This document shows positions 16,084 through 64,000 of a stretch of 64,000 nt of DNA, piece after piece. The number at the start of each line of letters is the position of its first letter. Position 1 is the stretch's first letter. Below the pieces are notes generated by a model that worked only from the letters and a program-made list of their open reading frames with translations, was not told the DNA's origin and searched no databases. Made by a program: the position numbers and the translations under genes. Origin of the DNA: Rhodosorus marinus CCMP1338 (Eukaryota; Plantae; Rhodophyta); NCBI GenBank assembly GCA_029953675.1, contig JAMWBK010000003.1, forward strand, positions 1,426,001 to 1,490,000, in the 5' to 3' direction.

Positions 16084-16965
16084 CTACCAAAACAAGGGCT
16101 CCCTGACCGACGCATTCAGGATATCCTCACTGGACCTGGAAAAAAGTACATCTCGCTCCAGCAGGCTCTCGAGATTATCATCTCCGCAGTCACTAACATC
16201 GACATTCATACCCGCGAATCCCATGGCGCTGCAATCGTTCAACGGAAGTGAGTCCAATATCTCGCCGAAGAGAGCATCTCCCGAGAGCTCGGAGCCCTCG
16301 CATTCCACTGGTGAATCATCAACGGGCTTTGGAGGTGCCTCCACATCATTCTCGACCTTTGCGGGGAAGGCCTTAGGCTTTGCTTCAATGTCCTTGCGTT
16401 CCGCACTCTTCTCCACTTGTGATCTATGCATAGTTGTCTTCATCTTCTTCGCGCCTTCTACCTCGGAACTTGCAGTATTCTTCCTCTTCCTTCGGCCCCT
16501 CTTCCCATTCGCAGCTTTGAAAGCATGTGACTTCTTGTGCATGGCCAGACTAGACCTCCACTTGAAGCTTCTGCTGCAGTTCTTTTCGAGGCACATGTAC
16601 GGGGCGCTTCCAGTGTGAAACCTTTCGTGCTCCCTAAGCCCCGGAGCGGAGGAGAAAACCTTCCCGCATCCCTCTGATGAACACGGAAAACTTTTCTCCT
16701 GTACGGCTCCTTCAGCTTTCTGGGGGAGATTTCCACCGAGAACATCGTCTCCAGTGGCAAGCTGTCCCTCTCCAACCTTTTCCGTTGTCCGGTACCCGCT
16801 AACCCGAGTCGCAATAGAAAACCATTCGGCCGGTATGGCTTTCCTTGGTCGCGCTAGTTGCTGAAACTCGGGCGTCATGGGACTGCATGGTACCATATTC
16901 GTTCCTCCAGAACCGAGAGCAGAGTTCTGCATGTGAACTAAGCCCCGACCCTCCTCCCTCAACAT
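16084..16965 (-). CDS. Two-finger C2H2 zinc-finger transcription factor
   Basis: Intronless 293-aa ORF with FPCSSEGCGKVFSSAPGLREHERFH-TGSAP-YMCLEKNCSRSFKWRSSLAMHKKSH, followed by a basic NLS-like KRGRRKRK. Confidence 0.9.
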   Translation of the reverse strand: MLREEGRGLVHMQNSALGSGGTNMVPCSPMTPEFQQLARPRKAIPAEWFSIATRVSGYRTTEKVGEGQLATGDDVLGGNLPQKAEGAVQEKSFPCSSEGCGKVFSSAPGLREHERFHTGSAPYMCLEKNCSRSFKWRSSLAMHKKSHAFKAANGKRGRRKRKNTASSEVEGAKKMKTTMHRSQVEKSAERKDIEAKPKAFPAKVENDVEAPPKPVDDSPVECEGSELSGDALFGEILDSLPLNDCSAMGFAGMNVDVSDCGDDNLESLLERDVLFSRSSEDILNASVREPLFW

Positions 16966-25963: not shown

Positions 25964-28484
25964 AACCTCCGATGCAATCGCGCTTGCCTTTTATACCGAA
26001 CTAGTTGGAGCCGTGGGCTGCAACGGATGAAAACAGTCTCGTGTTTCTCCTCCTTTCCGGAGAACAGAACCCCTACTTCACCACAAACAAACCCCTGCTA
26101 CTGTGGAGCACTTCCCACACGATTCTTCGCACAGTCTTGGTACGGTTAAGACGGAATGGAACAGAGTCGCAGTCCAAAACTACGTATGCACTTCCCTAAG
26201 TCACAATCCCAGTCCGATTCACGAAACGTAACGAACTCTGAATAACTTGCAGTTGACCGAAACAGTTTCCAGATCTGACCACTACCTACTCAAGCCCCCA
26301 GACTTCAATATGGTCCATATTTCAGCCTCATATCAGAAGACTTTCACTAATTCGCAACCCAGCCGCCTTACAATTGAAATCAAGACTAGCTTTCCCTAAA
26401 ATCCCATCTCAAAAGGCTAGTCCCTTGGTGAACCATCAATTACTCCTGTTCTAGCATACTGGTAAAGACATCACCACCCGTGCCGCGCAAAGACCCACAA
26501 CCCTGCCTGTCAAACCTACTCCAGCATCCCGAACAGAATCTAACCGTGCTCGGCAACTCCTTTGCCCCCCCGTGGGGTAGCTCTATATTCAGAATTCGAT
26601 AGAACTACCCTCGAACCTCCCCTCATTAAATAGCAACTCAACCTCTATATTTTCTGAATAAGAAAACAAAATTATAAGGGTAGCAATTCCTTCCAACCCC
26701 TATGCAGGAAACAAAATTTTCGTCTATTATAACTCAACTGAACATACCCCTAGGTTGTGAACTGAAGAGGGCACCTCCAAAACCCGCCATGCGTTTTTCA
26801 AGGTAAAAATTGAGGATTTATGGCAAATGACGATATCATTTGTCTCTCTTATTTTTCTTAAAAACAATTACTGGTGGTTTCTGAATCTGAGTTCCTAGAA
26901 TTTTACGGTGTACTACTTTCACAGAGCTGAAGATGCGAACATTCCAGGAAAGGAAATGGAACCCCGGTTTCTACAGTACAATAGGGAGGGTGGACGCATG
27001 AATCGTTGCCGCATGGGAGTCGAATATTTAAAACAAATTCGAATATATACCAGTATCATGATTGTTACCCCCCTCAAAACACGACGTCATCCATATAGCA
27101 TGCTGACATGGGGGAAAGCTGCGAAATGCGTCATGCGATAGTAAAAAATTTTGGTAGAGCGGCTCCTTCCAAATTGGGAAGTGAAATGGAGCTGCAGTGA
27201 GTAGTAATACTATTGCTAGTATATCTGTTCAGTGTATAAATCTATTGAAGCAAAATTGCCGTTCATTCAGACCGTAAATTGTGTGCCTATTTATGTAAAT
27301 CTAGAATGTCTTGTACCGCTTCACACTCTGTGGTTGGATGGCCCCAAATCGCATGAGATGACAAGCTTGTTGGTAGCTTACGGTACTCGTGGAATGAGAG
27401 CGAACAAGGGATCGTCTCTCATAAATGAAGCTTCTTTACCAAAATCGCACTGGTGAACGCAGGAAATGACTCCTTTACAAAGAGTCATTGCCAAGCAAAA
27501 AGAAGAAATCCGTTAGCATGGGATACATGTGATTCTCTTGGACTGTTGTTCTACCGAGAGCTAGCTCATCGCAAGTGCTTTGAAGCTATTCTTGTCCTTA
27601 ACAACCCTTGACTGGGAACACGCCTCAGTTGACTCAATGATGCTGAATTCTGGGACCACCACTCCCTCGGAACACACAACTCTGATTGAACAAAAAGAAT
27701 AGCCTTGGATACGAAAGACTTTTCTCGCACATACTTCTTACAAGGGCGTCGACAGAGATACGCGCCCTCTCGTGGGTGTGAGGAAGCACTCGTAGGACTC
27801 AGAGTTAAAAATTTCGGTTTCTGAACCCTCTACAGCTCTTGATGCTCGAAAGTCCCGGACGCAAGTCGAGAATTCCATGCCAGTTCATCCTGATACTCTC
27901 AATGCCCGTGAACCAGATTCTCAGAGCTAAAATTTCTATATCATGAATGAATTACTAGTTAAATATTTGAAATTCTATGCACAGCTTCAAAATATAGAAT
28001 ATTCTTTTCATAATATTGGAAATCGTCTTATTCTTTCCATTCATTGATCAGGAAAGTATCAATATCTTGACGAGCGCGAAGATCCGGCAGCCTAAAATTT
28101 TTTTCAACGAAAATGAAATGTTTTGAAATTTGAGTTTCGAAGGCTATAGATTGGGAAAAGAGCATCAAAAATTTGAGAATAACGGCTAGTTTAAAAACTC
28201 GGTAAGCAGAGATGAGTTAAAGCATTTTGGGCAGAATGGAACTCGGAGAGGTGGAGCAGGTGAATTGAGGCATTGAGCGTTCACCGATTTTATTGGTGAA
28301 GGTGGTAGAATTGATCTGGAAGATGTTATCTGGGAATTACTCTTACACTGAGGAATCGTGATGGTTTGACGGAGTTTGTCCTCTGGTGTCTGGGTGTCTG
28401 GTGGCTGTCTGGTGGTGGCTGTCTGGTATTTTATATGAGATTTCTTCGTGTCAGTGGTGCGAGCGTGTTTGGAAGAGAGGCAGA

Positions 28485-30088
28485 ATGAGGATGCGGGAGA
28501 ATGGGGAAACTGCGGCTACGCTTAAAAACTCAGAGGATAGACTTCAGGTGGCGAAGACTGTGTTTGAGAAGACGCGCGATGGAAGAACCATTCGCGAGTA
28601 CGAAAGAGGTCACATGCTGGGGAAAGGAGGATTTGCCAGAGTTTATCTATTCCGTGAAAAAAGTACTGAACGTGTTTATGCTGCAAAGGTCGTCACCAAA
28701 TGCGCTGTAAAAAAGCATAGGGCTCGTGAGAAGTTGATGTCGGAAATTCGGATTCATCGATCTCTCAAGCATCCAAACATTGTTCGATTCGTGCGATGCT
28801 TCGAGGACGAGAATCATGTATATATTTTGTTGGACTTGTGCGACTCTGGGAGTCTCACTGATCTCGTCAGAGCTAGAGGTCATCTTACTGAAGACGAAGC
28901 CAGACCTATCCTCCGCCAACTCATTGAAGCAGTAAGCTTCATGCACTCCCGCTGGGTGATTCACCGGGACATCAAACTAGGAAATATTCTCATTCACAAG
29001 GACTCTACGGTTCGAGTCGGTGACTTCGGTCTCGCAGCACAATTGGAGTCCGACAAGCAGCGAAAAATGACCATTTGCGGGACACCGAATTACATTGCTC
29101 CAGAGGTTTTGGACGGCGGAAGGGAAGGCGGGCATTCGTTCGAGGTAGACGTTTGGTCAATAGGAGTCGTGGTCTACACCGTGCTAGTGGGAAGACCCCC
29201 TTTCGAGACCTCCGACGTAAAGCAGACGTACCGAAGAATCAAGAACAACGACTACAAATTTCCGTCCGACTTGCGGCTATCTCGAGAAGCGAAGGGCCTG
29301 ATCACCGCCATTCTCAGCTCAGCCCCAGAACAGAGACCCCTGGTCCAGGATCTCCTCAAACACGAATTCTTTGACCCCAAGATATTACAAGTCACCCGAA
29401 GGCAGCCTAGTGGCGCTCCGCTTCACGAGCCGATGAGGGTCTGCAAATGGATCGACTATTCCAGCAAATACGGACTCGGATATCAACTACGAGATGGAAC
29501 GTTTGGAGTCTATTTCAACGATGCTACCAAAATGCTTCTCTCCGGAGCTTCGGTAGAGTACATAAACGCCTCGGGGGGGTTTGAGGGAAGGGTGCGCTCG
29601 GATGAAGCCCCTGCACATTTGAAAAAGAAAGTGACCTTGTTAAACAACTTCAAGTCGTATCTACAAGCGAGGAAGTCCTCTGGCCAGGAAGAACCAACGG
29701 GCGACGAAAATGAAGATGTAAGTCTTTCACTCAAAATGAGCACACACGCCGCCATGGGTTGACATGGGTTGAGTAACAGGAGGTCAAACCCCACCGGTAG
29801 CTGACCAATCGTCGATGTCGCTTCAATAACTATTTGCAGGGATCTGTGTACGTGAGGCGATGGTGGCACGTGAAGCATGCGTTCCTCTTTCAGCTCAGCG
29901 GGGGCGAGATTCAGGCGAATTTTGACGATAGCTCCGAGGTCGTCCTGTGTAGTCGGACTGGTGTAGTATCGTATCGATCGAAAAAGGGAAGAAGAGAGAC
30001 GTTCCTAGCAAAATCGCTGCCAGACATGCCTGACCTTGCCCGTCGTCTCAAGTACTTACAACAAAGCGTGCCAACGACTAAGAGCTGA
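28485..30088 (+). CDS. PLK1: Polo-like kinase with C-terminal polo-box domain (2 exons)
   Basis: GKGGFARV, YAAKVV, HRDIKLGN, DFGLA, ICGTPNYIAPEV, GHSFEVDVWSIG. Polo boxes KWIDYSSKYGLGYQL and FLFQLSGGEIQANFDD. Intron 29718-29839. Confidence 0.95.
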
Positions 30089-36322: not shown

Positions 36323-37345
36323 TCACCTTGAGTAGCCCCCGTAATAAGCTGCTGCGAACGCTCCTCTCTTGCCAGGGTGTTGATCAGCTCATATCCGAAC
36401 CACTGACTCTACCGAACAACTCATGACCCTACCCAATCCTGAACCTTTCGGATTAAAATAGACTTGATGCACTGCTCTGTTGGATACCGAGAACGATCAT
36501 TCAGAGTCCAGATACGTGGACGGTCGGTTTACTTCTTCTAGAAGAGAGTACGAATACGGTTCCTGAATTTAGGCTTCAGAAGCGATAACTCGCTTCAGCC
36601 ACTTGAGTCATAAAGAGATCCGCTCTACAACCGCATCTAACAATAGTAACCCCATTCCGAACCGAGCTCCAATGACCCAGAAGTTCCCTTCGTACGGAGA
36701 CATAATCAACAAAACGACGAAACGCTCAAACCTATAAGAACATTATAATAGTATGGTCATATCCCAAACACGAGATATGGCCGATGACACCCAAACCCAC
36801 CTCATCAGGCCAAAGCTCAAAACAATAAATGAAAATGAAAAAAAACACAATTAAAACATCACTAAAAAAATGAGGTCCAAGATATTGATTGAAAAGTATA
36901 AAATCTTGACATAATCTAGCTTTCAATCAAAATATTCGTTGGGAAAGGACGATTTCCATATTTCATTTGGAAAAAAAGGAATGGGTAACCCCCGTTAAAT
37001 TTATGATGAAAATTCTGTTCTTTATCATTTTTAATTATTATTTTTTTCGCTTTCGATGGGGATGGGAGACGCGCGGGGTAGCGGAAGTGGACGGGAAAGG
37101 AATCGAAATGTGAGAGGTAGGACGTGCAAGTGGTAACCGGGGCGGGGGGACTGGGAAGTGGATGGGTAGCTGAAGGTGTGAGTGGATTTTTTTTTATATT
37201 GTGAGGGAATTGGACCTACTGAAATGATTAGAAAGTTTTCCGGTTAGGATAAGCTAAGCTTGGCTTCCTTTTATGGGGCGGTGGATGTAGGTATATCTTG
37301 AGAGTGTGTTTTTTAATGTTTGGTTTGTTCAACTGCCGTTCAGAG

Positions 37346-40300
37346 ATGGATGCTAGGTTGTGCTTCGTGGTGGATGTGGGAAGACTGGTTGTGGGTAGGG
37401 GAGATGCGAGATCGATTAGGAGAATAGGTAACTGTAGCCCGTGGAGATGCGGGGGAAGGGCGCCAATTTTGAAACGCGCGGCTGTCGTGAATGGATCAGA
37501 TGAACCCGCAGCCGAAGTACCTAAGAACGAGGATGATGCTGAGGAAGCGGACGTAATTGAAAAAAGTACGGGAGTTGATGCTGTTGATTCACGCGCTGAC
37601 GCACCTGAGACTGAGGTCGTTGATGCCCGTGACCATGTCGATGAGGACGCAGAAGAGAGATTGTCGGCCGAAGTCGACCAGACTGGGCCTGACACTGCTA
37701 CAATAGCATCCGCAGAATCAGAAGATGCGCCAACACCTGAAGCTTCGGATCAGGGAGCAGGTGAGGACCTGTCAGATGAATTGGAGGAAATTGAAAATCG
37801 GGGCGATGAGGATGCGGAGGACGCATCCGGAGATTCTGGCGAGGGCACTCAATCTCGGCCACCGGAGAAAACAAAACAGGTCAAGGAGCCGGTGAAGACT
37901 CCTCAGGGTTCGTACATAATAGTCAGTGGGCCTAAGGGATACTGGGGTCGTGTGTGCAGCGGATGTGGGGCCGTTGTCGGCCAGGTAGAGGGGTCCAGTA
38001 AGAGAGAAGCCAAAATGAAATCCGGATCAATGAAAGAATTGAGGTTGAAGTGGCAGAAACTATCGAGAACAGCGGACATCACGAGGAAGGCACTCTGCGA
38101 TCGATGTCGTCTCCTGGAGCGCGGTGACATTCGAGCGGCTCTTCGAGCCCTTGATGATGTGGACCCGTTGGTCTTCAAGAACCAGCTTCGATTGTTGAAG
38201 GGTAGGCAGGTGATGGTGTTGAAAGTAATCGATGCTCTGGACTTCGATGGCTCGTGGGTTGGCTCTTTGCGGGACCTAATTGGTGGTAACCCTATTGTTC
38301 TGGCCGTTACGAAAATGGACCTGGTGGTGGACCCAGACGACGCCGTTGGTAGGAATCGTCTGATGGCCTGGATCAATCGGAGAGTTGCGATGAAGGGCAT
38401 TCGTCCTGTTGCATCTTTTGCGGTTAGCGGAAAGCTTGGCTTGGGAGTGGACGACCTCGCCGAGTACGCTTTGGAGACCTTGAACGGTCGAAACTTGTAT
38501 GTCGTCGGGTACGCGAATTCTGGAAAGTCTACGTTGGTGAATCAACTGAAAGCTGCTTTCGCGACGAGGGCCTACTTCGTGGGCCCTCGAGGCTACGGTC
38601 GAAAGAAGGATCTCGAGCGTGCTACTGCAACTGTATCCCGCTTGCCTGGAACGACGCTCAAGTCGATCAGAATCCCGTGCTTCAAATCACACAAGCATGC
38701 TATGTGGGACACTCCAGGAATCATTGTTCCCAGGTATCGCTTTGACGGCCTTGAGGACGCTAGGATTAAGATGATCTCCGAGGAACCCACTCGACTGGAG
38801 CCCAAGATATTTAAAATGTACCCAGAAGACCTTATCGTCGTCGGGGACAACTATCTCCAGATAGAGATTACACCGGAACCTGGGAGAAGGAGAGCTGGAC
38901 CCGTGGAAATGAAATGGTACTCCCCACTCTGCACGGATGTGGAATTGCTAAATAGGGACGAGGCGCTGGCGAGGATTCCAAGGGAAAGACCAGACGATGT
39001 GGATAATAAAGTGATTCCAAGACTGACGAAGGAGTTCGTGCCCAGCGTCTCCGTTCGCGGTGGTGTTGACGCGGACATAGTCATTCAAAATCTGGGCTTT
39101 ATGGCTTTGTGGAGCCGCAATCAAGACTTTGCCGTTCGCATATTCGTCCCACGGGGATGCAACCCAACAGTTCGTCCGAGCATGCCGATTCCGGATTATA
39201 GCCGATTGCCCCCCCCTGCACAGCGAGATGCAGACGACTACAGCGTAGAAGTCGCTGGAGGTTGGCGTGATGTTTCCTCACGGACGGACAAGAACAAGGA
39301 GAGGAAGGAAATAGAACTAAAACGCATGAGAGATGCGGAAGAAAAAGCTCGAGGGGAAGACGATGGTGAATTTGACCCCAGCGATCGTGAGAAGGACGAT
39401 GATGGCGACGACGATGATTTCGAAGATGGCGATGACGACGACGATGAATTTGTTGGAGGGCGAGGGAAATCACTCCGCATGGACGATATATTCAGCGACC
39501 GGGAGTCGTCGATCAGTAAGTTCAGTTTCGAAGATGAAGATAGAAGACCACCTCGTGGACAGTCCCGCGGAGCCCCGGCTGAAGGCCGGGCGGCCAGAAC
39601 GAACCGAGCATACCGACCGTCTGAGAAAGGTGGACGGGGTGTCAGGCCGACCGAGAGCGCGGGTCCGTATTCGAGGTCGAAGGAAAGCATTCAAGAGGAT
39701 GATTTGGATGATTTCGGATTTGACATGGACTTCGACGTTGAAGCCGTGAACACGAGGAGCGGTGGTAAAGGGGACCGAAATCCGTCTGGTGTTCGAGGGG
39801 AGCCGCCCAGGCGGAGACAACCTAGCAAAGCCTTCCTCGATGATGAGGACGATGACGACGACGACGACGACGACTTCTTTGGCTTTGGGGAGGAACGGAA
39901 TCGAGCCCGTGGTCGTAACGGCGAACCCGAAGCGAAACGTGGGGAAAGCAAGTCGTCCTCGTCTTCTTTCAAACCCTCAAATGATGATTTTGAGGAGGAG
40001 GACGAGCTATTCGACTTTGAAACGGGTGGGAGGGAGTTGATGAGCCTGGACGAGGACGAGGAGGATCTTGGTGAGGAAGCCATCGTCTTTGATAAAGACG
40101 AATACGAAAAGCGAACCAAGCCGCCTCCTCCCCGAGGGGAATTTGCAAAGCGACGAGCATCTGGTGACGAGTATGTAGATGACAAGGGCAATGAAGACGA
40201 CTTGTCTGGGTCGTTCGACACCACGCCGATAGAGTTGAAGGGCAAAAGCAGAGGCCCGGCGAACAAAACGGATCAACAGTCGCTTGAGGATATGATCTTT

Positions 40301-41533
40301 GGAGAATCTGGTTCTTTGGACGGTATTGCACCTAGGAAAAGCCATGATTTGGAGGACGAGGATGACGACCCGGATTTCTTCTGGGATGATCGGAAGGGGA
40401 AAGGATCCCCCCGCGCTGACTTTGATGGCCCCGATGATGTCGTGAAATCTCAGGACGATTTCTTCTGGAAGCAGCCAAGGGCGAGCAACGAGAAGAACAC
40501 GCGGAGTGGGGGGAGGGCCTCTTCTAGGGGCCAAGGCTCTCGGAGTGAAGACTTGGATTGGTTTTCAGATATTGAGGGCGACGTCGAGGGCCGTGGAACT
40601 CGCGGCATGGGAGAGCGGCGCCAGGATGGAATGGGCACACGGAGGATTCGCTCAGGGGACTTCTTCGATGGCAGCAGATCTTCAACAAATCGTAGGAAAG
40701 GGAATAAGTCCAACCCTGAATCGCAGGATCGCCAACGGGGATCAAGATCAACAGACAGGGACGACTTTTTCAATTTTGACGACGATCTGTTTGACACGAC
40801 CGATGAAAGACCGAACCCTTCAGATTCTGGGTCTCGTCGAAAGGGAAAACGAGACTCCTCTAACCCTAGGAGGGGACCGAGTCCGGACCGCGACGATGAT
40901 TTTTGGTCTTCTGGAAAAGGACCAGAGAGCAGGAGGCCCCAAGGTAGGAGATCCGGAGGATCAAACAAATTTTCAGATGACAGAGGGCGTTCGAGCGGAA
41001 GGAGGGAGGAGGAGCCGAACTATTCCTTCGACATTGAGGACGAATCAGATTTTTGGGGCAACAAAGGAAGCTTTGCTAGCGACTCCCGGTACCGCTCAGG
41101 TGACCGAGAAAGGAATCGCAAAGGCCAGGCGGAACCCAGATCTCGAAACAGCGGTAGGCAGCCCCCAGACGATGACTTGGACAGCTTCTTAGAGGATCTC
41201 GACTTGATCCCCAAAAAGGAAAGCTCACCTCAGAACCAACGACGCGACCAGCGGGGTCGCCGCAGCATCGGAGGTTCTTCCAAAGGCTCAACGAGGGGGG
41301 ACTCGAAGCGCGACAGAATTTCGGGAGTCGACGACGAAACAGATTTTTGGTTGACGAAAACACAGTCTAACCGGCGTGATGCTTCCGACAGGGGCGGGCC
41401 GAGACCAACAGACGGTGGAGATGACGACGACTGGTTTTTAAACGATTCGTTCACACCGCCAGACTCCAAGATTGGCAAGAAACAGCCCGAGTCGAAAGAA
41501 TCGGACGACTTTATTGACTCTTTTTTTGGATAG
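37346..41533 (+). CDS. YqeH/NOA1-family circularly permuted GTPase, organelle-targeted, with very long acidic disordered tail
   Basis: Zn-finger CSGC...CDRC, then G4 TKMD, G5 SGKLGLG, G1 GYANSGKST, G2 PGTT and G3 DTPG in cpGTPase order. Intronless ORF; in-frame ATGs at 37316 and 37346 with a transit-peptide-like N-terminus. Confidence 0.88.
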   Translation: MDARLCFVVDVGRLVVGRGDARSIRRIGNCSPWRCGGRAPILKRAAVVNGSDEPAAEVPKNEDDAEEADVIEKSTGVDAVDSRADAPETEVVDARDHVDEDAEERLSAEVDQTGPDTATIASAESEDAPTPEASDQGAGEDLSDELEEIENRGDEDAEDASGDSGEGTQSRPPEKTKQVKEPVKTPQGSYIIVSGPKGYWGRVCSGCGAVVGQVEGSSKREAKMKSGSMKELRLKWQKLSRTADITRKALCDRCRLLERGDIRAALRALDDVDPLVFKNQLRLLKGRQVMVLKVIDALDFDGSWVGSLRDLIGGNPIVLAVTKMDLVVDPDDAVGRNRLMAWINRRVAMKGIRPVASFAVSGKLGLGVDDLAEYALETLNGRNLYVVGYANSGKSTLVNQLKAAFATRAYFVGPRGYGRKKDLERATATVSRLPGTTLKSIRIPCFKSHKHAMWDTPGIIVPRYRFDGLEDARIKMISEEPTRLEPKIFKMYPEDLIVVGDNYLQIEITPEPGRRRAGPVEMKWYSPLCTDVELLNRDEALARIPRERPDDVDNKVIPRLTKEFVPSVSVRGGVDADIVIQNLGFMALWSRNQDFAVRIFVPRGCNPTVRPSMPIPDYSRLPPPAQRDADDYSVEVAGGWRDVSSRTDKNKERKEIELKRMRDAEEKARGEDDGEFDPSDREKDDDGDDDDFEDGDDDDDEFVGGRGKSLRMDDIFSDRESSISKFSFEDEDRRPPRGQSRGAPAEGRAARTNRAYRPSEKGGRGVRPTESAGPYSRSKESIQEDDLDDFGFDMDFDVEAVNTRSGGKGDRNPSGVRGEPPRRRQPSKAFLDDEDDDDDDDDDFFGFGEERNRARGRNGEPEAKRGESKSSSSSFKPSNDDFEEEDELFDFETGGRELMSLDEDEEDLGEEAIVFDKDEYEKRTKPPPPRGEFAKRRASGDEYVDDKGNEDDLSGSFDTTPIELKGKSRGPANKTDQQSLEDMIFGESGSLDGIAPRKSHDLEDEDDDPDFFWDDRKGKGSPRADFDGPDDVVKSQDDFFWKQPRASNEKNTRSGGRASSRGQGSRSEDLDWFSDIEGDVEGRGTRGMGERRQDGMGTRRIRSGDFFDGSRSSTNRRKGNKSNPESQDRQRGSRSTDRDDFFNFDDDLFDTTDERPNPSDSGSRRKGKRDSSNPRRGPSPDRDDDFWSSGKGPESRRPQGRRSGGSNKFSDDRGRSSGRREEEPNYSFDIEDESDFWGNKGSFASDSRYRSGDRERNRKGQAEPRSRNSGRQPPDDDLDSFLEDLDLIPKKESSPQNQRRDQRGRRSIGGSSKGSTRGDSKRDRISGVDDETDFWLTKTQSNRRDASDRGGPRPTDGGDDDDWFLNDSFTPPDSKIGKKQPESKESDDFIDSFFG

Positions 41534-43167: not shown

Positions 43168-44139
43168 CTACACCCCGCCGGAAATGTACGTATGATATGG
43201 GCAATCACCCATCTCCAAGCTTTCTGTGGGGAAGTAGACCTTCATGGTGTTGTTAAAAGCGGCTTCGCAGAGTTGATCCTCAGAAATGCCTCGAGCTGCA
43301 GCGACCACCTCGGTGACGCATCGGATATGGCAAGGTTCGCATCGACCTTTGACGCAGGCGCCTAGCTCGAATTTCTTCTTATCTTTTGCTGGCCATTTGC
43401 TCTGTACGTGAGAGAATCCCGCGTGCGAAGGTCGAATTTCGCAGTACGGCGAGTCTGTCTCCAACATGATTCGATCGAGCGGGACAGCTGAGGCTACCTT
43501 GATGTTCTCCTCGGTTTTCAAGGAACATCCGTTTATTCCTATAAAAAGCCCCAGGTCCAGCAACTCGTTCATTTCCTCCATTGAACCAGTAAAGGAATGT
43601 ACCACTCCAGAAGTAAACCGCCCTCTATTCTCGCTTGTCATTTTCACAAAGTCCCCAGCAGCATTTCTGTTGTGAAGGAACAGCGGAAGCTTAAAACGCT
43701 CCGCCAGAATAAACTGAGCCTCGTATCCAATCTTCTGCTGTTCAATTGAACAGAAGTGGGTTCTATCATAATCAAGTCCACATTCTCCAATTGCAACCAC
43801 TTTGTCACCTCCTTCTCGGATCACTCCGCTGAGAAGATCCAGGTGAGCATTCACGTCGCCTTTGAACTCATTCGCTCGTGTAGGATGCACTCCCACTGTA
43901 CTCACTAGCATCGAGTTATCCTTTACAAAATCGAGAGCCTCCCTGCTCTGATCCAATGTCCCAGCAGTTACCATGATCTTCATCACTCCAGCCTCCATCG
44001 CTCGCGAAAGAACGCTTTCCATATCATCCAAATGCCGCTCCGTCCCATTGTACACTCCGCGGAACATTCCATCGGTAAGATTCGCTCCAATGTCAATAAA
44101 TGCTCGGCTCATCCTTCTCTTCAAACCTGATGACATCAC
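43168..44139 (-). CDS. TatD-family DNase (TATDN1-like)
   Basis: FIDIGANLTD, TVGVHPT, VAIGECGLDYDR, LPLFLHNR, GVVHSFTG, GINGCSLKT, IMLETDSPYC. Intronless. Confidence 0.95.
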   Translation of the reverse strand: MMSSGLKRRMSRAFIDIGANLTDGMFRGVYNGTERHLDDMESVLSRAMEAGVMKIMVTAGTLDQSREALDFVKDNSMLVSTVGVHPTRANEFKGDVNAHLDLLSGVIREGGDKVVAIGECGLDYDRTHFCSIEQQKIGYEAQFILAERFKLPLFLHNRNAAGDFVKMTSENRGRFTSGVVHSFTGSMEEMNELLDLGLFIGINGCSLKTEENIKVASAVPLDRIMLETDSPYCEIRPSHAGFSHVQSKWPAKDKKKFELGACVKGRCEPCHIRCVTEVVAAARGISEDQLCEAAFNNTMKVYFPTESLEMGDCPYHTYISGGV

Positions 44140-45353: not shown

Positions 45354-46806
45354 ATGGGGAGGCCGGTAGGAGTTGAAGCTTCAGAGAGGGCTTTCACCAG
45401 CGTTTTGACTGGCCTAGCCCCTTTAAGAGCTTTCTTCAGAGTAGTCTGGTGCGGATCAAAGATCGGCGAAAGTTTGTCCTTTACAGCATCGGAGGAACAA
45501 CTTGTTGTGCGGAGCATAAACGCAACCAGATCGGTGGCGTCGGAGTTCTGCTTTTCGAAACTCTTTTTCGACGACTATGTTCTAGCAGATTCAAGAGGTA
45601 GTAAGGTTGCCACCTCCATAGCGGCGGCAAAGTTCCTGCTCCCGGCGGTTAAAAATCCAGGGTATGTACTGCCTCTGAACCGTCCTCACCGCCGAAGGCT
45701 AGTCGATTTGCTCACATCGGGCTTGTCCAACCTCCCCTCCCCCCTCACAGCCTGGTGAAGCAGCTCACGTTCTCTTTGCTAGTCAAGGACCAAGTCCTGC
45801 TGATAGAACTGCTCCTGAAGAGCGATATTTTGAAGAGATTCCATATTCCAGCCGAGGATAGTGAGATTCTCCGAGCCGTTTATAACACGGACCGGTGTAC
45901 GTGCAACGCGTCAGTCCGGCCCAGGTTCCTCTCTGACATCTTGTCAAATTTTCATGGGAAGCTAGAGGAAATCAAGTTTGCCTGCTCATCTTCTCAATTC
46001 CGGGTTTTGAGCTTTGTGGAGGTAAATGAAGGAGACGCCCACCTAAAATGCCTTGGCGGGACAGAGTGTCATTCCATTCGCTCACACAGTTTCTCAATCC
46101 TCTACTTCTTCCAAAGGACGAGGATGAGAACACAATGAACGTCCTGCTACGAACGGAGATTGCGGTGGATGTAAAAGAATTCGAGGAATACTTTTTCCCC
46201 AAAGCCGGCGTCGTCGAGCTGACTTTTAGCTTCAAGGCGTTCCGAGCCATTCTCGAACTGGCAGAAGGTTTTGATGTTCCCCTGAGAATTTTTTTTGACA
46301 AAGGGGGTCTACCAATAGTCTTCATTATCTCATATCCGGGGACCGTGAACCAGAGCTTCGAGGCGCAGTTCATCCTTGCCACGAGGCAGCACATCACGGA
46401 CTCGGCGGGAAGCAGCAGGACAGATTTACAGTCGACAGCAGAATCCGGTAGAAAGCAGAACTCCTTGGCAGAGAAGGCGTCGGCGTCAACGGCACCCGAG
46501 AGCTCCACGAGGCGTGGTAACACAAGCATCGCTTCGTTCCTAACAAGAGGTGGTGAGTTAGTTCGAAACCGAATTCTGCGAACGGATCACAGCTGCTGTT
46601 CTGTCCGAGGGCGAACGCCAGTGCTTATGCTTGAAATATCGTTTGCCATATTCGCAGATAACGATGACGGTTCTTGGAACAGGGCTGCGAACTCCAATGA
46701 AACACCAGCACATGCAGAGAAAAGTGGAATCGACGAGAGCAGAGGGGACAGGGGAGATGACGAGGACGACGATGAATTCGTTGAGGGAACACCACCCCCT
46801 GAGTAA
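45354..46806 (+). CDS. RAD9: 9-1-1 checkpoint clamp subunit RAD9 (3 exons)
   Basis: SKIGESLSF...LVVRSINATRSVASEFCFSKLFFDDY, RPRFLSDILSNF, LRTEIAVDVKEFEEY, ELTFSFKAFRAILELAE...IFFDKGGLPI, FEAQFILAT, and an acidic tail. Confidence 0.85.
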
Positions 46807-50171: not shown

Positions 50172-51539
50172 ATGACGATGGCGTTTACGGTCTCCGTTGT
50201 GGTTGAAGGGAGGTTTGTTGGCGGTGGCTCCTGCAAGCATGGCGGGGCTCGCAGATCTAGAGGGACGCGGTTCGGGTTGCGGATGCAGGAGACTAAAGTT
50301 GAGGGTGCCAAAACCGTAGAAGTTCCGACATCTAAGAAATTGGGTGTCGGGATTATTGGAGCCGGCAGAATTGGACAGGTTCACGCTGAGAACATCAACT
50401 TGAAGGTGAAGAATGCAAAGTTGGTGGGCATATCATCTGGAACGAAAAAGCTGGCGGAAGTCTGCTCCCTCGAAAATTCTTGCACGCCGTACTACGATTA
50501 TCATGAGATGCTTGAGGTAAGCAATGAAACCGGAGACTCACGACGTAACCCGCCGAAAATATTACTAGTCTAGAATATAGAGTTTTCGCTAGTACAACCA
50601 GAGCCGACAATCGGCATCTTTTTCCCATCTTGCTTACTGTGTTTGCTTGGTGCCTGCGTGTTTCTCGCCGTCAAGAACCCGGAACTCGACGCAGTCTGCA
50701 TCTGTTCCGCATCGAACCAGCATACCGACCAGATCATCGCTGCAGCGGAGGCAGGAAAGCATATTTTCTGTGAGAAGCCTATCGATACTGACTTGGCCGT
50801 AATCGATGAGGCGCTCAAGGCCGTAAAGAAAGCCGGTGTGAAGTTGCAGGTCGGGTTCAATCGACGTTTCGACTGCAACTACTCGCGAGTTCGACAGGCC
50901 GTGGTCGCGGGAGAGATAGGCACCCCACAGATATTCCACATCACCAGCCGGGACCCGTCGCCACCACCGATTGAGTACGTGAAGAATTCGGGAGGGATCT
51001 GGTTGGACTGCTCTATTCACGATTTTGACATGGCGCGTTTCCTTGTCGGAGACGACGTCGAGGAAGTGTATGCTCTGGGGGCTGTCAATATTGACAAACA
51101 AATTGAAGAGTATGGTGACATTGATACCTCTGTCATCTCGCTCAAATTCAAGAACGGCGTGATCGGGACAATTGACAACTCAAGGAGGGCCGTGTACGGA
51201 TACGATCAACGTTGTGAAGTATTTGGATCGAGGGGCTCAGTGTCTATTAACAACAACTATCCGAACTCAGCAGTCGTCTCCACTGCTGAAAAGATCCAGC
51301 GCGATCTGCCGCTGCACTTCTTCATGGATCGCTATACTGAGTCTTTTGTCACGGAGATTCGTGACTTCGTGGATTGTGTTGTTGAAGACAAGAATGTACC
51401 TGTGACTGGATGGGACGGACGTGCGCCAGTAGTCATTGCTATAGCAGCTAAAAAGTCCTACCATGAGGGACGACCGATCAAGTTGAGTGAGGTTGATTTG
51501 CCGATTCCCGAAGAGTTGGAAGGCTGGGACGGCCAGTAA
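50172..51539 (+). CDS. iolG: myo-Inositol 2-dehydrogenase (IolG-like, Gfo/Idh/MocA) with plastid-type transit peptide (2 exons)
   Basis: GIIGAGRIGQVH, HIFCEKP, VGFNRRFD, ITSRDP, GGIWLDCSIHDFDMARF, YGYDQRCEVFG. N-terminus MAFTVSVV...RSRGTRFGLRM. One intron starting at 50517. Confidence 0.85.
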
Positions 51540-57840: not shown

Positions 57841-60233
57841 ATGCTTCAAGTAGCTCTTCGCGGGGGTATCGAGGCGGAGGAGGTTGTTGGACGTGCCGCT
57901 GCTCGGCGGGAGGAGGTTGAACGGACACAGGGCGAAGTGTTGCGTTTGGTAGGAGATGACTTTGGGGAGGCGTTCGTGGAGAAGAGCTTGGGTACATTGA
58001 GGAGTCTGTCGCAGAGTACCGATGATGCGGAGATTGCGACGCGGGAGTGGGCAGCAAGAGCCTCCGAGGTTCAAAAGGAGAGGCGAGAGACAGCGAGTGC
58101 TGCGTCAACTCTTAAGGAGCTCAGCGAACAGCTCTCTGCTCTTGCAGAGCTCGGTGAAATCCTCCAAGAAAGTGACGTCATGGAAGCTGAAGAGGATATT
58201 GCCGTTGTGGAAGAGCTTTTCAATTTGATCAACGATGCTGGTCGACTTTGTAAAGGACGCGGTGCACGTATTTTTCAACAAATTTACGTAGAACTGCAAC
58301 ATCGAAGAGATGATGCGCTCCTGATGATGCAAAATCGACTCCTGGAGTCAATTAACCTGACTTCTTCTGCTCTCGAAGTTCGACGCTGCAGCCCGATGAT
58401 CGCCGACGCGCTCCACAGGACCAACACTTTTGAGGAAACCATCACGGAACTTATCCGCCAAGTGAGTGAGTCTGATGACATACTGTGGGCGATCCGGAAA
58501 GCCGATGTTTTCGCAGTGGCTGAAGACGGAGATGAAAGCGACTCCATATGGACAATAGAATGGAGTCAGCATCGAACCTACGCTTACGATTTCCCAGCGT
58601 CCATTCAACTGGAAGAAAATCCGCTAGAGACTGAGCTTCCAGAAGAGCTCCTAAGTGTGCAGGATATTGCCAACGTGGCTTTTAGAGTTGACGTGCTCTG
58701 CGGCGTGCTCATGACCCAACTCTTCGGTACGAGAGACTCGGAGTATGCTAATTACTTACGCGGCCTTGTCTGGGACTGGCTTGCGAGGGATCTGTTTCAA
58801 CCACCGTTGATTCTGGCTAGTGACGGGGCCAGTACGAGCTCGATTGTGAGTACGACGTCGCTTCCAAAGCGCTGTGTTGCGGCATTCTATCTCTCCAAAG
58901 TTCTCCCAGAGATTGTTGGGGTGGGAGACGTAGAAGTCGTTTTCGGGGATAGCGCGGCTGTTCTGAAGATGGTCGCGAGAGAGCTCCGCGCTGAATTGCT
59001 CTTCCGAGCTCGCAAGTCAGTGTCAAACTTTGTTCTCGACGATGAAGACCATGTGTTGCTGGCGCCCTTAGCTTCTCCCTGGCGTCCGAAAGAACGTCGC
59101 AATTCGAACTGGTTTCCGTCCTGCCTGGTCACTAGGACGTCACTGCACATAATGGAGGTGGTCAAGCAAGCGTGTGCGGACGCCGCAACTGCTTCCCAAG
59201 ACGGCGGTGAAGATCAAGTCCTACCGGAGACATTGCTATCTACCGCGATCGAGGCGCTCGAAGCCTATCGCGTGGATATCCCAATTCTTCACCAGACTGC
59301 GTTCCAGGGCTCCCTCAAGCTGAGATGCCTCTACCACAATGACTGTTTCATGCTGTCCCACGTATTTGGAAACATACGCTCCACTTCGCGACTGGTTCCA
59401 ACGTCAATGAAACTTCGGTCGTCCGGAAGCGAGGTCCTCCTTGATGCAATTGCTGACGAGAAGCAGAGACTATATCAGTCAATAGAGATTTCGTCCTTTG
59501 GCGACGGATCTCTAACACACTATGGAACGTAAGCGGAGCAAGGGTTTGGGATCTTGTTCAGCAGTCGCCACTGGAGGAAACAAGGAAGCTAATCAAAAAA
59601 AACTTATGTGCGACAAATGTATGTACTGTTGAATGCAGGCCGCGCGTAAGGAAACAGTGTGATCTGGAGTTGACGAGAATGTTCGCTCATAATCAGGAGG
59701 TGTGCCGCGTTTACGCGGCCATGCTACCCGCTGGAGCGGCCGGGAACGCGATAGCCTCCTTGTGCGCGGAATTTCTCAACGCTTTGACTGGGTCTATCCT
59801 AGCCCTTTCTGAGATAGCCGCAGAAGCATGCGACGGGCTAGCCTTTCTTCTCGCAGGCACGGTTGCAAATTGCGAGAGGCTAGCGACACCTGATCGCCTC
59901 CGTGAAGCAGACCCTGACGCCGCGAAGGGATACCAGACTGCGGTGAAAAGGGTCCATGTGTTTCAGGAAATTCTGAACATTCGAATGGAGGATATCGCGG
60001 ACCACGCAAAGCAAGGAAAGTACAAAGGTCTGCTGGACAAGGAAGAGGTGAGTCCGCAAGAATTTCACTAACAGGTCGCCAACTATGCAGAGCCAGCTCC
60101 AACTGAGCTCCTCATATTCCTCCCCTCTTAGGTGGAGAAGCTAATCCTAGCGATATTTGAGGATTCAGCGCTTCGTGTTCAGATGATCCAAGAGCTTCAT
60201 GAAGATGCCCAAGATGAAGACTGGGGGTGGTAG
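57841..60233 (+). CDS. ZW10: ZW10 kinetochore/NRZ tethering subunit (3 exons)
   Basis: Long helical protein with FPSCLVT, LYHNDCFMLSH (ZW10 HNxC motif), GSLTHYG|...VCRVYAAMLP, FQEILNIRMEDIAD and EV|EKLILAIFEDSALR. Confidence 0.8.
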
Positions 60234-61262: not shown

Positions 61263-62237
61263 TCACATCTGTTCAGTTTCACTTCTTAGGCCGTCGAACA
61301 GGTCACCTGCTCGTCGCTGTAGGACCCTACGCTGGATCGCCAAGTTATCGCTCTTCACGAGCTCAAGATCCTCGATCCACTCCTTCCCGACGGTCGTCCG
61401 ACAGTTCATTATCATCTGCGCGACCTTCTTCGGACTGATGTAAGTGTCGGGGTTCGTCCTAACCACAGCCTCCTCGCGCAAGAGATTGTACAGGAATGCT
61501 TCGCTATCAGGGCCAATCGGGTGTGTCTGCAAGTACTCACTCAGCCACATGAAGTGATGATTGGATTTCTCCTTCATTCTCTGCAGAATACGGTGGGCTG
61601 CGTAGTGCGTGGCCAACGTCCTGATGGAGCGGTAATTAGGGACGCGGAGCGGGGATGACTCGTCATCCATGGGATCCACGTCCAGTATGCGTTCTTTCAA
61701 GGGCTCCAGATCTGCGCCGGGATTCATTAAGAGCTCATAGTGCATCCTGGTGATCTCTAGATTTTCCATGTCCATCAGATTCAGGTCCTGTTTCCATTCC
61801 TCCGCAAGATGCTCCCTGGAGGCTAGAATCTTCCTGGCAACCCCTGACGGCTCGATAGTGAACTTGAACTCCCTCCTGTAGTAGCCTTTAGGATGCGCGA
61901 ATACCTCAACGCCCTCTACAGACTCTGCCTCGAACATTCTCTCTATGTACCCTTGCCAATCGAAGAATTCCTTCTCTTTCTGCGTGAAGTTTTCAAAGCG
62001 ATTCAACCACTTCTCGGTGGCGCCGTCATGAAACTCCCTTAGGTAAAAGAGGACCGTCTTCACTGCCCGACGAGTTATATAGTCTTTCAAGCAATCGGTT
62101 CCTGCCTGCCTCACTTGCGGCTCGTTACCGACATACTCAATGGTCATCTTGGGCACGTTCACCCTAGCCGCGCGCGTACTCGACAACTGGGGCTTCCCAC
62201 CCCTCGGCATGAACGAACTACTCCCGACAAAAGCCAT
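61263..62237 (-). CDS. Plastid-targeted protein with two tandem RbcX-like domains
   Basis: MAFVGSSSF transit peptide. Repeat 1 LKDYITRRAVKTVLFYLRE...WL...VARKILASREHLAE. Repeat 2 ...WLSEYLQTHPIGPDSEAFLYNLLRE...VKSDNLAIQRRVLQR. Both align by eye to cyanobacterial RbcX (LQSYLTYQAVR..., WLGEFSKRHPIQESD..., LRILTVRENLAE, NGNHRRSLLER). Confidence 0.75.
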   Translation of the reverse strand: MAFVGSSSFMPRGGKPQLSSTRAARVNVPKMTIEYVGNEPQVRQAGTDCLKDYITRRAVKTVLFYLREFHDGATEKWLNRFENFTQKEKEFFDWQGYIERMFEAESVEGVEVFAHPKGYYRREFKFTIEPSGVARKILASREHLAEEWKQDLNLMDMENLEITRMHYELLMNPGADLEPLKERILDVDPMDDESSPLRVPNYRSIRTLATHYAAHRILQRMKEKSNHHFMWLSEYLQTHPIGPDSEAFLYNLLREEAVVRTNPDTYISPKKVAQMIMNCRTTVGKEWIEDLELVKSDNLAIQRRVLQRRAGDLFDGLRSETEQM

Positions 62238-64000
62238 ACCTTCTCAAATATACAACACTGATCCTGTGAACAAAGTTCTCTATATATATGTAGCAATAAG
62301 TTACCCGAAATCCGCGTAGCACAACTCAGGAGGATAGCATGAAAACAGACCAATAAAACGAATAGAGAGTCAGAATCTGTTCAATTCGTACCCAAGAAGC
62401 CTAGCATACATCACGAAACCTTTTCCCTAATCCTGCCCACCACATCCTGCCACTACAACAACAGACAACCCTTATATCGTCTTGTTTTGCAATTCATGAA
62501 CAGAAAAAATCCTAGCCTACCCTCTTCCATCTTCATCCAACACCCTACCCCCCCCTCTTTTTGGTATTTCTCTCCAACAGACATTTCCCTCATTTTTTTT
62601 ACGATTACATTGTGCTTCCCACCAAACACACCCACATCTCAAAACACATACTTCCACACATCCCTCAAAACAATCCTCAAAAGTCAAATGCACCCCATCA
62701 TTGTCGAATCTAGATTTTCGTTTTCCAAACCGCCACACCCCCTACCCCTGTAACAGAATCCATTTCCATGAGTAAGTCCTATAAAATTTTCCCTTGCATT
62801 CGTCAACAATAGTAGAGGGTAGGGTAAACAAAAACCCTAAACGTTTGTGATGAAGAAAGATGTCCTCATATTACTCATTTAATTTATGATTTCGGGTTGC
62901 TCTGGAAAAACAGAAATGGTATATCTCCCCCTATCAAATTTTGGCTAGGTTTTTAATTTGCATTTGATTTCTAAGGAGGTTAGATATGGTTTTAGAAATA
63001 GGGGGGGGGGGAAGGGGTTTGAGATGAGGTTTTTTGGGGTTAAAAAAGAGAACATCTCGGAGAGAAAAGCACAAAATACAGCAGGACATTCTGAGAAATT
63101 TTCAAGGCTTAGAATGAACTGATTGGCTTTGGTAAGATCCATTCGGTTAGGAAATTCAACCCCATTGGCAAAATTCTGCTCCGATGAACAATTCATTGGC
63201 TAATATGCAACGGATTTACCCTCGATTTGCAGACCCGATTTGCTAGAGATACGAAATATCAGGAGATATTTGATATTGATTCATCCAATCATACAACATC
63301 ATGGTATGCAAGTCTCTCATACGAACACTTGATTGGTTAGAAAGAATATCGGAATGTCCGGGGAATCCAGCCCAATGATGTAATCTACAGCTGTCCTAAT
63401 CAGCAGAATTATTCTGGAATATGAAATATCCAAATGAATTGCCCGAAGAAGCAGAGGAGTTCGTTCATCTGTCATCAGCTATGGGATATTATACATCCCC
63501 TTGGGGGTGTGAGTAATACCATCTCAGCATCACCAGCAAACTTAGAACGATGATAGGGGGCTTGGAGATTGGTTAGGAGCGTTGCGGATGTTATTGTGGA
63601 AATGTTTTCGACTACTGAGATATGTTGCCAGATAGGAATGGAATAGGCATTTGCCGAATTTTCGGGGGGAGGGGGTCGGGTTGGGGATGTGTGGAATGGT
63701 CTTGAAGTAGACCTAATGGCAAAACGAGATATAGACCTTTAAAAGCACTAGCTGCGGATCAAAATTTCCGTATGAATTTACGAACTTTTACAGGACGATT
63801 TTACAACTTATCCTTTTCATATTTTCAGGTTCCATCCCCAACCGGAAATGACATCAGACCTCGACCGCCTTCCGAAGCTTCTGCTGGTAGGGCGCTCTAC
63901 CTCTTGTACAAGATTGGAGGCATATAGCATGTGCATGTGCAAACTTGAGTTTCCCCGATACCGTTTGACCACTGTTTGGGATGAGCGGCACTTTTTAGTG

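Follow-up and report, generated by a model that had tools for sequence, protein, structure and literature searches.

What does an RbcX-like gene do in a red alga? The question is raised by a gene for a 324-amino acid (aa) protein in a 64,000-nucleotide stretch of the Rhodosorus marinus CCMP1338 genome (assembly GCA_029953675.1, contig JAMWBK010000003.1, positions 1,426,001 to 1,490,000 of the forward strand; this whole stretch is referred to as the window), whose product resembles two RbcX chains joined in tandem. Canonical RbcX is a homodimer of ~130-aa chains, often encoded within rbcLXS, that serves form IB Rubisco, whereas red algae carry form ID Rubisco. Organisms with form IB Rubisco generally retain RbcX (RbcX-II structure paper). 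A review states that homologues of Raf1, Raf2, RbcX and BSD2 "are not found" in red-type organisms, and a 2018 paper on Griffithsia likewise reports no RbcX or RAF1 homologues in the red lineage. The analysis described here indicates that the protein is an RbcX homologue by descent and fold, yet lies outside the ordinary definition of the family.

The Pfam RbcX profile (PF02341, gathering cut-off 27 bits) matched the whole protein with 48.3 bits in two stretches. Scored alone, each half reached about the cut-off: 26.8 bits for the N-half (aa 1-187; E = 6.7e-6, profile positions 5-61) and 27.1 bits for the C-half (aa 188-324; E = 5.5e-6, profile positions 17-98). A family alignment of 116 sequences was divided at the linker into N-half and C-half profiles, which matched each other in hhalign with a probability of 99.2% (E = 2.3e-19, 117 columns), indicating an internal duplication. 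When these profiles were searched against all PDB sequences, the best match of the N-half was Anabaena RbcX (2PEO, E = 7.2e-7) and that of the C-half was Synechocystis RbcX (2PY8, E = 2.9e-8), followed by Arabidopsis AtRbcX1 (4GR2, E = 2.9e-5). In global hhalign alignments, each half was matched to residues 12-112 of Anabaena RbcX with a probability of 96% and E ~2e-9. The tandem RbcX homology is far beyond chance, and the two divergent RbcX-like repeats proposed in the initial annotation were recovered by the Pfam scores of the halves, by the comparison of the halves with each other and by the PDB profile searches. The alignments with Anabaena RbcX also gave insertions of 25 and 13 aa in repeats 1 and 2, in good agreement with the ~25 and ~12 aa estimated before, and revealed that alpha4 is shortened by a 5-aa deletion in both halves. 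A Pfam match to DUF3253 over the hairpin and alpha4 of repeat 1 (aa 122-152) scored 17.8 bits, below its cut-off of 22.1 bits, and was rejected as noise.

An AlphaFold2 model calculated with the 116-sequence alignment reached a mean predicted local distance difference test score (pLDDT) of 90.3 and a predicted template modelling score (pTM) of 0.83, with low confidence at aa 1-38 only. It superseded an earlier model from a 5-sequence alignment, which was unusable (pLDDT 45). In the model, the four-helix topology of RbcX with its long kinked alpha4 occurs twice in one chain, with helices at aa 39-68, 72-83, 94-103 and 130-152/155-171 (kinked) in repeat 1 and at aa 198-224, 226-238, 245-254 and 269-291/294-323 (kinked) in repeat 2. 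Insertion 1 was modelled as a beta-hairpin (strands 107-114 and 121-128) and insertion 2 as a small beta-hairpin (strands 258-260 and 265-267). In a Foldseek search of the PDB, all matches with a probability of at least 0.99 were RbcX chains from cyanobacteria or Arabidopsis, with template modelling (TM) scores to the target of 0.61-0.78 and root-mean-square deviations mostly of 2.7-5.4 Å (8.2 Å in one case). The top matches, again all RbcX chains, had a probability of 1.00 and TM scores to the target of 0.64-0.78, and the remaining matches did not exceed a probability of 0.18. The RbcX-like fold that had been surmised from the sequence is therefore matched by the predicted structure. A single RbcX protomer does not form a globule of its own; together with the high pTM, this suggests that the two halves would pack against each other as an RbcX-like pseudo-dimer.

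A protein identical to that of the window is already annotated in the assembly, on the same 3.35-Mb contig, and a complete transcript-derived protein from R. marinus MMETSP0315, also of 324 aa, is 95% identical to it. These two matches confirmed the red-algal host that had been suspected (Rhodosorus belongs to the class Stylonematophyceae of the Rhodophyta), and the full-length transcript shows that the gene is expressed in the sister strain. Orthologues with 64% identity and a matching architecture were found in Bangiopsis sp. CCMP1999 and in one further assembly. The near-cut-off Pfam scores of the single halves might be taken as a sign of a chance reading frame, a pseudogene or an annotation artefact, but this explanation is contradicted by the full-length transcripts in related taxa, by the 64% identical orthologues of the same architecture, by a family of 375 members with strongly conserved positions and by the high-confidence fold prediction. 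We assign it a vanishingly small probability and regard it as effectively refuted.

To determine the extent of the family, we searched 1.84 billion representative proteins exhaustively by HMMER, using a profile of close orthologues. The search returned 375 proteins at E<=1e-3, 109 at E<=1e-10 and 18 at E<=1e-30. Most of the 375 relatives are 300-450 aa long, with a family median of ~360 aa, and many were matched over both repeats. The red-algal members represent four classes (Rhodosorus, Bangiopsis, Madagascaria, Compsopogon, Porphyridium aerugineum, Erythrolobus and Cyanidiococcus yangmingshanensis); the protein of the last species, KAF6005476.1, is labelled "hypothetical protein". Further members come from brown algae (Choristocarpus, Pylaiella and Cladosiphon), from diatoms (Cylindrotheca, Ditylum, Striatella, Cyclophora and metagenome-assembled genomes of Bacillariaceae) and from the ochrophyte Chrysoparadoxa australica, which has at least two paralogues (P0029 and P0101). 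Three brown-algal and ochrophyte names were obtained from a word-indexed search with a 53-sequence profile, which gave at least six matches. All of the named members are phototrophs with red-type plastids. RbcX was the sole Pfam family matched by any member (30 of 116 sequences reached E<=1e-3), and the diatom and brown-algal proteins have no precomputed Pfam domain and are labelled "hypothetical" or left unnamed. Thus, what was first described from one sequence is a large family across red-plastid lineages, not a single odd gene. No close prokaryotic relative was found in a low-sensitivity pattern scan of GTDB, made with the alignment of close relatives on one genome per prokaryotic species, and a scan of this kind does not exclude distant bacterial relatives.

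Average-linkage clustering divided the family into at least six subfamilies, three of which (clusters 8, 10 and 1) contain no species-named member. In the diatom-type subfamily (P0202-P0317), 95 of 116 sequences end in F-[E/Q/D], typically G-A-F-E, after a variable linker; this C-terminus could be a self-docking or partner-binding tail. Three diatom-type proteins, P0062, P0087 and P0115, carry S/T/K/D-rich low-complexity insertions of 100-300 aa in repeat 1, before the hairpin and alpha4, which indicates that the insertion site of repeat 1 is expandable. An N/K-rich subfamily (P0076, P0080, P0083, P0098, P0102 and P0198) has a conserved G-P-x-[LM]-M C-terminus. A prokaryotic or cytosolic origin was considered for the acidic, signal-less P0076-type sequences and rejected, since the contig carries a mitochondrial-carrier gene and the longer P0198 has a signal peptide. 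The signal-less members are truncated gene models of eukaryotic members.

The initial annotation had described the gene as nuclear-encoded and its product as targeted to the plastid. The first part is supported by the neighbouring genes: ORFs (open reading frames) for a Polo kinase, Rad9, ZW10 and a C2H2 zinc-finger protein, together with the absence of tRNA genes from the 64-kilobase (kb) window, identify the window as nuclear DNA. As regards the second part, transit peptides of red algae and glaucophytes are known for an early Phe in an acid-poor N-terminus, and we surveyed the N-termini of 14 sequences of the red-algal tier for this pattern. In these sequences, 49-140 aa precede the first conserved helix, and 0-7% of the initial 30 residues are acidic. 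Thirteen of the 14 have their first Phe at positions 3-13; the exception is the Erythrolobus model, whose N-terminus is longer and whose first Phe is at position 31. The Phe context is often (A/G)F(V/I), as in MAFVG, MGFVG, MDSAGFVG, MEVGFV and ...IGFIP, and the motif xFVG is common to the N-termini of Rhodosorus, P0002 and Bangiopsis. In the window protein, Phe is at position 3, aa 1-30 contain neither Asp nor Glu, and the conserved mature part begins near M31. Secondary red plastids use a bipartite signal, made of a signal peptide and an AxA↓F site. Among the other members, 62 have a start codon and are extended at the N-terminus by 25 aa or more. A hydrophobic core resembling that of a signal peptide is present in 30 of them, and in 14 of these 30 it is accompanied by an AxA↓F site (GRASAFSS, TASAFVPT and GRANAFSPF are examples). 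Plastid targeting is predicted from this N-terminal sequence pattern, and we infer that members of the family would be imported into plastids.

Which parts of the RbcX machinery are retained in the two repeats? In cyanobacterial RbcX, Y17 and Y20 reportedly hold the two Phe residues of the RbcL tail, and E32 and R70 are said to act at the corner. [quoted passage not shown] The two identical RbcX chains make up an arc that promotes RbcL8 assembly and holds the RbcL dimer until RbcS takes its place. This description draws in part on the titles of PDB entries 2PEM, 2PEJ, 2PEK and 3RG6, of which 2PEJ and 2PEM bear on Y17 and Y20 and 2PEK on the polar corner (Q29, E32, N34 and R70). We mapped the RbcX positions by hhalign to Anabaena RbcX and took the residue frequencies from the family alignment. 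The equivalents of T19 (T in 62% of repeats 1 and 94% of repeats 2), W40 (W in 88% and 66%) and R75 (R in 90% and 97%) are common to both repeats. At the corner, repeat 1 has E in 55% of sequences for E32, D in 79% for N34, R in 59% for R70 and Y in 62% for Q29, and all four positions are variable in repeat 2. At the position of Y17, repeat 1 has F (49%) or L (30%), and repeat 2 has L (62%). At the position of Y20, repeat 1 has Q (54%) or R (16%), and repeat 2 is variable. In the window protein, the repeat 1 equivalents of Y17, T19, E32, N34, R70 and R75 are Y53, T55, E68, D71, K136 and R141, respectively, and T19 and R75 correspond to T210 and R280 in repeat 2, where the corner equivalents R220, E223 and M275 are variable across the family. 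By this mapping, scaffold residues are kept in both repeats and the corner is kept partly, in repeat 1 only, with Y20 lost in both.

The most conserved residues of the family follow the hairpin of insertion 1, namely P130 (directly after the hairpin, 98% of the family), R141, E147, D151 and L152. The alpha3-alpha4 turn, where the hairpin is inserted, is what we take to be the corner of the RbcX structure. The linker closes with a conserved S-P-L-R motif, in which P196 is found in 87% of the sequences and R198, the first residue of repeat 2, in 95%. The fusion appears to have permitted a division of labour between an elaborated client-contact corner in repeat 1 and a degenerate corner in repeat 2.

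The other partner of the presumed interaction is the RbcL tail. Red-type RbcL chains of known structure (Galdieria 1BWV and 4F0H; diatoms 5MZ2, 5N9Z and 7YK5) end in WKDI(T/S)FNYTSTDT, and this end aligns with the position of the green form IB EIKFEF tail, the red form of which is DITFNY (form ID tail peptide, WKDITFNYTSTDT). Since red RbcL retains the FNY tail, an aromatic-x-aromatic handle is still available. We propose that two diverged RbcX units were fused into one nuclear-encoded, plastid-imported chain that would act as an asymmetric pseudo-dimer, in which repeat 1 would have retained corner residues and gained a conserved 25-aa beta-hairpin at the corner, and repeat 2 would have retained the scaffold residues and lost the corner. 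In the stroma, the protein could bind folded form ID RbcL, its cleft taking the conserved WKDI(T/S)FNY tail and the enlarged corner of repeat 1 contacting the adjacent RbcL subunit, and it might in this way stabilise RbcL2 and RbcL8 intermediates ahead of RbcS binding. Both the distribution across lineages and the corner residues that repeat 1 retains favour a role in the assembly of form ID Rubisco; it is the best-supported function and a plausible one, for which we put the chances at about even. RbcL is the putative client, and the chaperone activity is likewise putative.

The RbcL tail could also be approached by a Rubisco-associated regulator that is not an assembly chaperone, and that would bind the tail and modulate the access of CbbX or organise Rubisco in the stroma or the pyrenoid. 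The red tail is long and conserved, and the CbbX activase is said to engage it. A green-algal RbcX-like protein, from Ulva, localises to the pyrenoid matrix, and the diatom members have the conserved C-terminal GxF[EQD] tail and the low-complexity inserts. No evidence for a link to CbbX was found, however. A pyrenoid-specific function is also unlikely to hold, because the family has a member in Cyanidiococcus and, to our knowledge, Cyanidiophyceae lack pyrenoids. We therefore consider a regulatory function rather improbable.

Several observations weigh against the assembly role. According to papers that cite Joshi et al. (2015), the betaE-betaF hairpin of red-type RbcS substitutes for RbcX, and this is, as those papers relate it, the published reason why RbcX is thought unnecessary in the red lineage. 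Since the hairpin is reported to replace the function of RbcX, the need for RbcX in these organisms is not obvious. The hairpin ("built-in RbcX") is proposed to stabilise the RbcL8 assembly of red-type Rubisco, the step that is also proposed for the tandem protein, but it is a part of RbcS rather than a separate chaperone and is not homologous to the tandem protein. The substitution of Y20 in both repeats, and of Y17 by F or L in repeat 1 and by L in repeat 2, implies that any grip on the peptide would not be the one known from cyanobacterial RbcX. Finally, most members of the family are metagenome or transcriptome proteins without a species name, so that the restriction to red-plastid lineages is tentative.

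Some of these observations would be accounted for if the RbcX fold had been repurposed, giving a plastid protein whose cleft or hairpin corner binds a non-Rubisco assembly intermediate of the stroma or the thylakoid. The cleft tyrosines are not conserved, RbcX is said to be dispensable given the RbcS hairpin, and the best-conserved elements (P130, E147, D151 and L152 with the hairpin and the SPLR motif) are without counterpart among the known functional residues of RbcX; in plants, AtRbcX1 was reported to co-purify with the CF1 beta subunit. On the other hand, repeat 1 keeps the corner equivalents of E32, N34 and R70, the tail motif of RbcL is conserved, every named member belongs to a lineage with form ID Rubisco, and the family offers no other domain or partner clue. 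On balance, repurposing for a different client seems to us unlikely, if worth keeping in mind. In the strongest form of the assembly role, which we put forward as a tentative possibility, the tandem family might be the lineage-specific chaperone that has been missing for the assembly of form ID Rubisco. The red lineage would have kept the cyanobacterial RbcX when it exchanged its Rubisco for a proteobacterial one, and would then have duplicated, fused and re-tooled it for the new client.

Comparison with known systems places the tandem protein with RbcX and at the same time sets it apart. With the cyanobacterial RbcX-I structures (2PEM/2PEN from Synechococcus PCC 7002, 2PEO/3RG6/2WVW from Anabaena, 2PY8 from Synechocystis and 3Q20 from T. 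elongatus) it shares the four-helix topology and long kinked alpha4 in each half, profile E-values of 1e-7 to 1e-9, T19, W40 and R75 in both halves, and, in part of the family, the equivalents of E32, N34 and R70 in repeat 1. Canonical RbcX is a single-domain protein of ~110-150 aa (~170-200 aa with a transit peptide), whereas the protein described here has 324 aa and two repeats, the 25- and 13-aa hairpin insertions, the 5-aa deletion in alpha4 and the loss of Y20. It also differs in being encoded by a nuclear gene outside an operon, in its predicted targeting peptide and in its form ID Rubisco host. The plant and green-algal RbcX-II proteins (AtRbcX1, 4GR2, and CrRbcX-IIa) and AtRbcX2 (4GR6) are likewise nuclear-encoded and plastid-targeted and have the RbcX fold, and both AtRbcX1 and AtRbcX2 were among the Foldseek matches. 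However, they are single-domain homodimers from form IB lineages, without hairpin insertions or tandem fusion. RbcX-II also illustrates that the geometry of the cleft and the way in which the peptide is bound can shift along with the client (RbcX-II structure paper).

A full-text literature collection that lacks most subscription journals yielded no account of a tandem RbcX or of one from the red lineage. The only report of an "RbcX-like" algal protein that we found concerns the green alga Ulva. This protein, UM003_0241 (2026 preprint), likewise adds further elements to an RbcX domain and is linked to the way Rubisco is organised, but it comes from a form IB organism and has one RbcX domain with a C-terminal Rubisco-binding motif instead of a tandem. 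In the family described here, a conserved, apparently plastid-targeted RbcX-derived protein exists throughout lineages that were thought to be without RbcX, and its form, which is fused and asymmetric and carries insertions, has largely hidden it from domain annotation. Among the Rubiscos of red algae and diatoms are the most CO2-specific ones known. Their assembly in tobacco chloroplasts has failed for 25 years, with the presumed missing chaperones not identified, and papers from 2025-2026 still cite the failure and name no factor. The tandem protein is a specific candidate to be co-expressed with form ID RbcL and RbcS; if the assembly role is true, co-expression would let red-algal or diatom Rubisco assemble in E. 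coli or plant chloroplasts. The family also offers a natural case in which a homodimeric chaperone appears to have become a single-chain pseudo-dimer, with labour divided between the halves, and raises the evolutionary question of how a green-type assembly factor might survive the replacement of its client.

The coordinates of the gene, of the parts of its product and of the other genes of the window are listed below.

Features of the window, with positions counted from its first nucleotide
Feature	Residues	Position	Strand	Basis or remarks
Coding sequence, tandem RbcX-like single-chain protein	1-324	61263..62237	(-)	intronless ATG-to-stop ORF, 324 aa + stop
N-terminal extension, predicted plastid transit peptide	1-38	62124..62237	(-)	pLDDT <60, MAFVG start
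RbcX-like repeat 1	39-171	61725..62123	(-)	Pfam, PDB profile search, AlphaFold2, hhalign
Insertion 1 (25 aa), alpha3-alpha4 junction	105-129	61851..61925	(-)	hhalign, AlphaFold2
Inter-repeat linker	172-197	61647..61724	(-)	AlphaFold2 model, conservation
RbcX-like repeat 2	198-323	61269..61646	(-)	Pfam, PDB profile search, AlphaFold2, hhalign
Insertion 2 (13 aa), alpha3'-alpha4' junction	258-270	61428..61466	(-)	hhalign, AlphaFold2
C2H2 zinc-finger ORF		16084-16965		Pfam scan of window ORFs
Polo-box kinase		28386-29762		Pfam scan of window ORFs
Large GTPase (GTPase domain), 1411-aa ORF		37298-41533		Pfam scan of window ORFs
TatD nuclease		43168-44139		Pfam scan of window ORFs
Rad9 fragment		46048-46806		Pfam scan of window ORFs
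GFO/IDH/MocA oxidoreductase		50643-51539		Pfam scan of window ORFs
ZW10-like kinetochore gene		57841-60233	(+)	convergent with the RbcX-like gene

The RbcX-like gene is solitary, and its 3' end lies ~1 kb from the 3' end of the ZW10-like gene. The short plus-strand ORFs that overlap its coding sequence were without support, and two further ORFs of the window, of 694 and 281 aa, had no Pfam match. The ZW10-like product has 732 aa in the deposited annotation, compared with 563 aa in the longest single ORF, and a 133-aa ORF at 59670-60071, after the ZW10-like ORF, suggests a short intron near 59533-59669. In the 5' flank of the RbcX-like gene (62400-62760), the plus strand is C/A- and pyrimidine-rich and of low complexity, with runs like ccctaccccccccctcttttt; this C/A-rich tract may be a promoter or 5' untranslated region feature.

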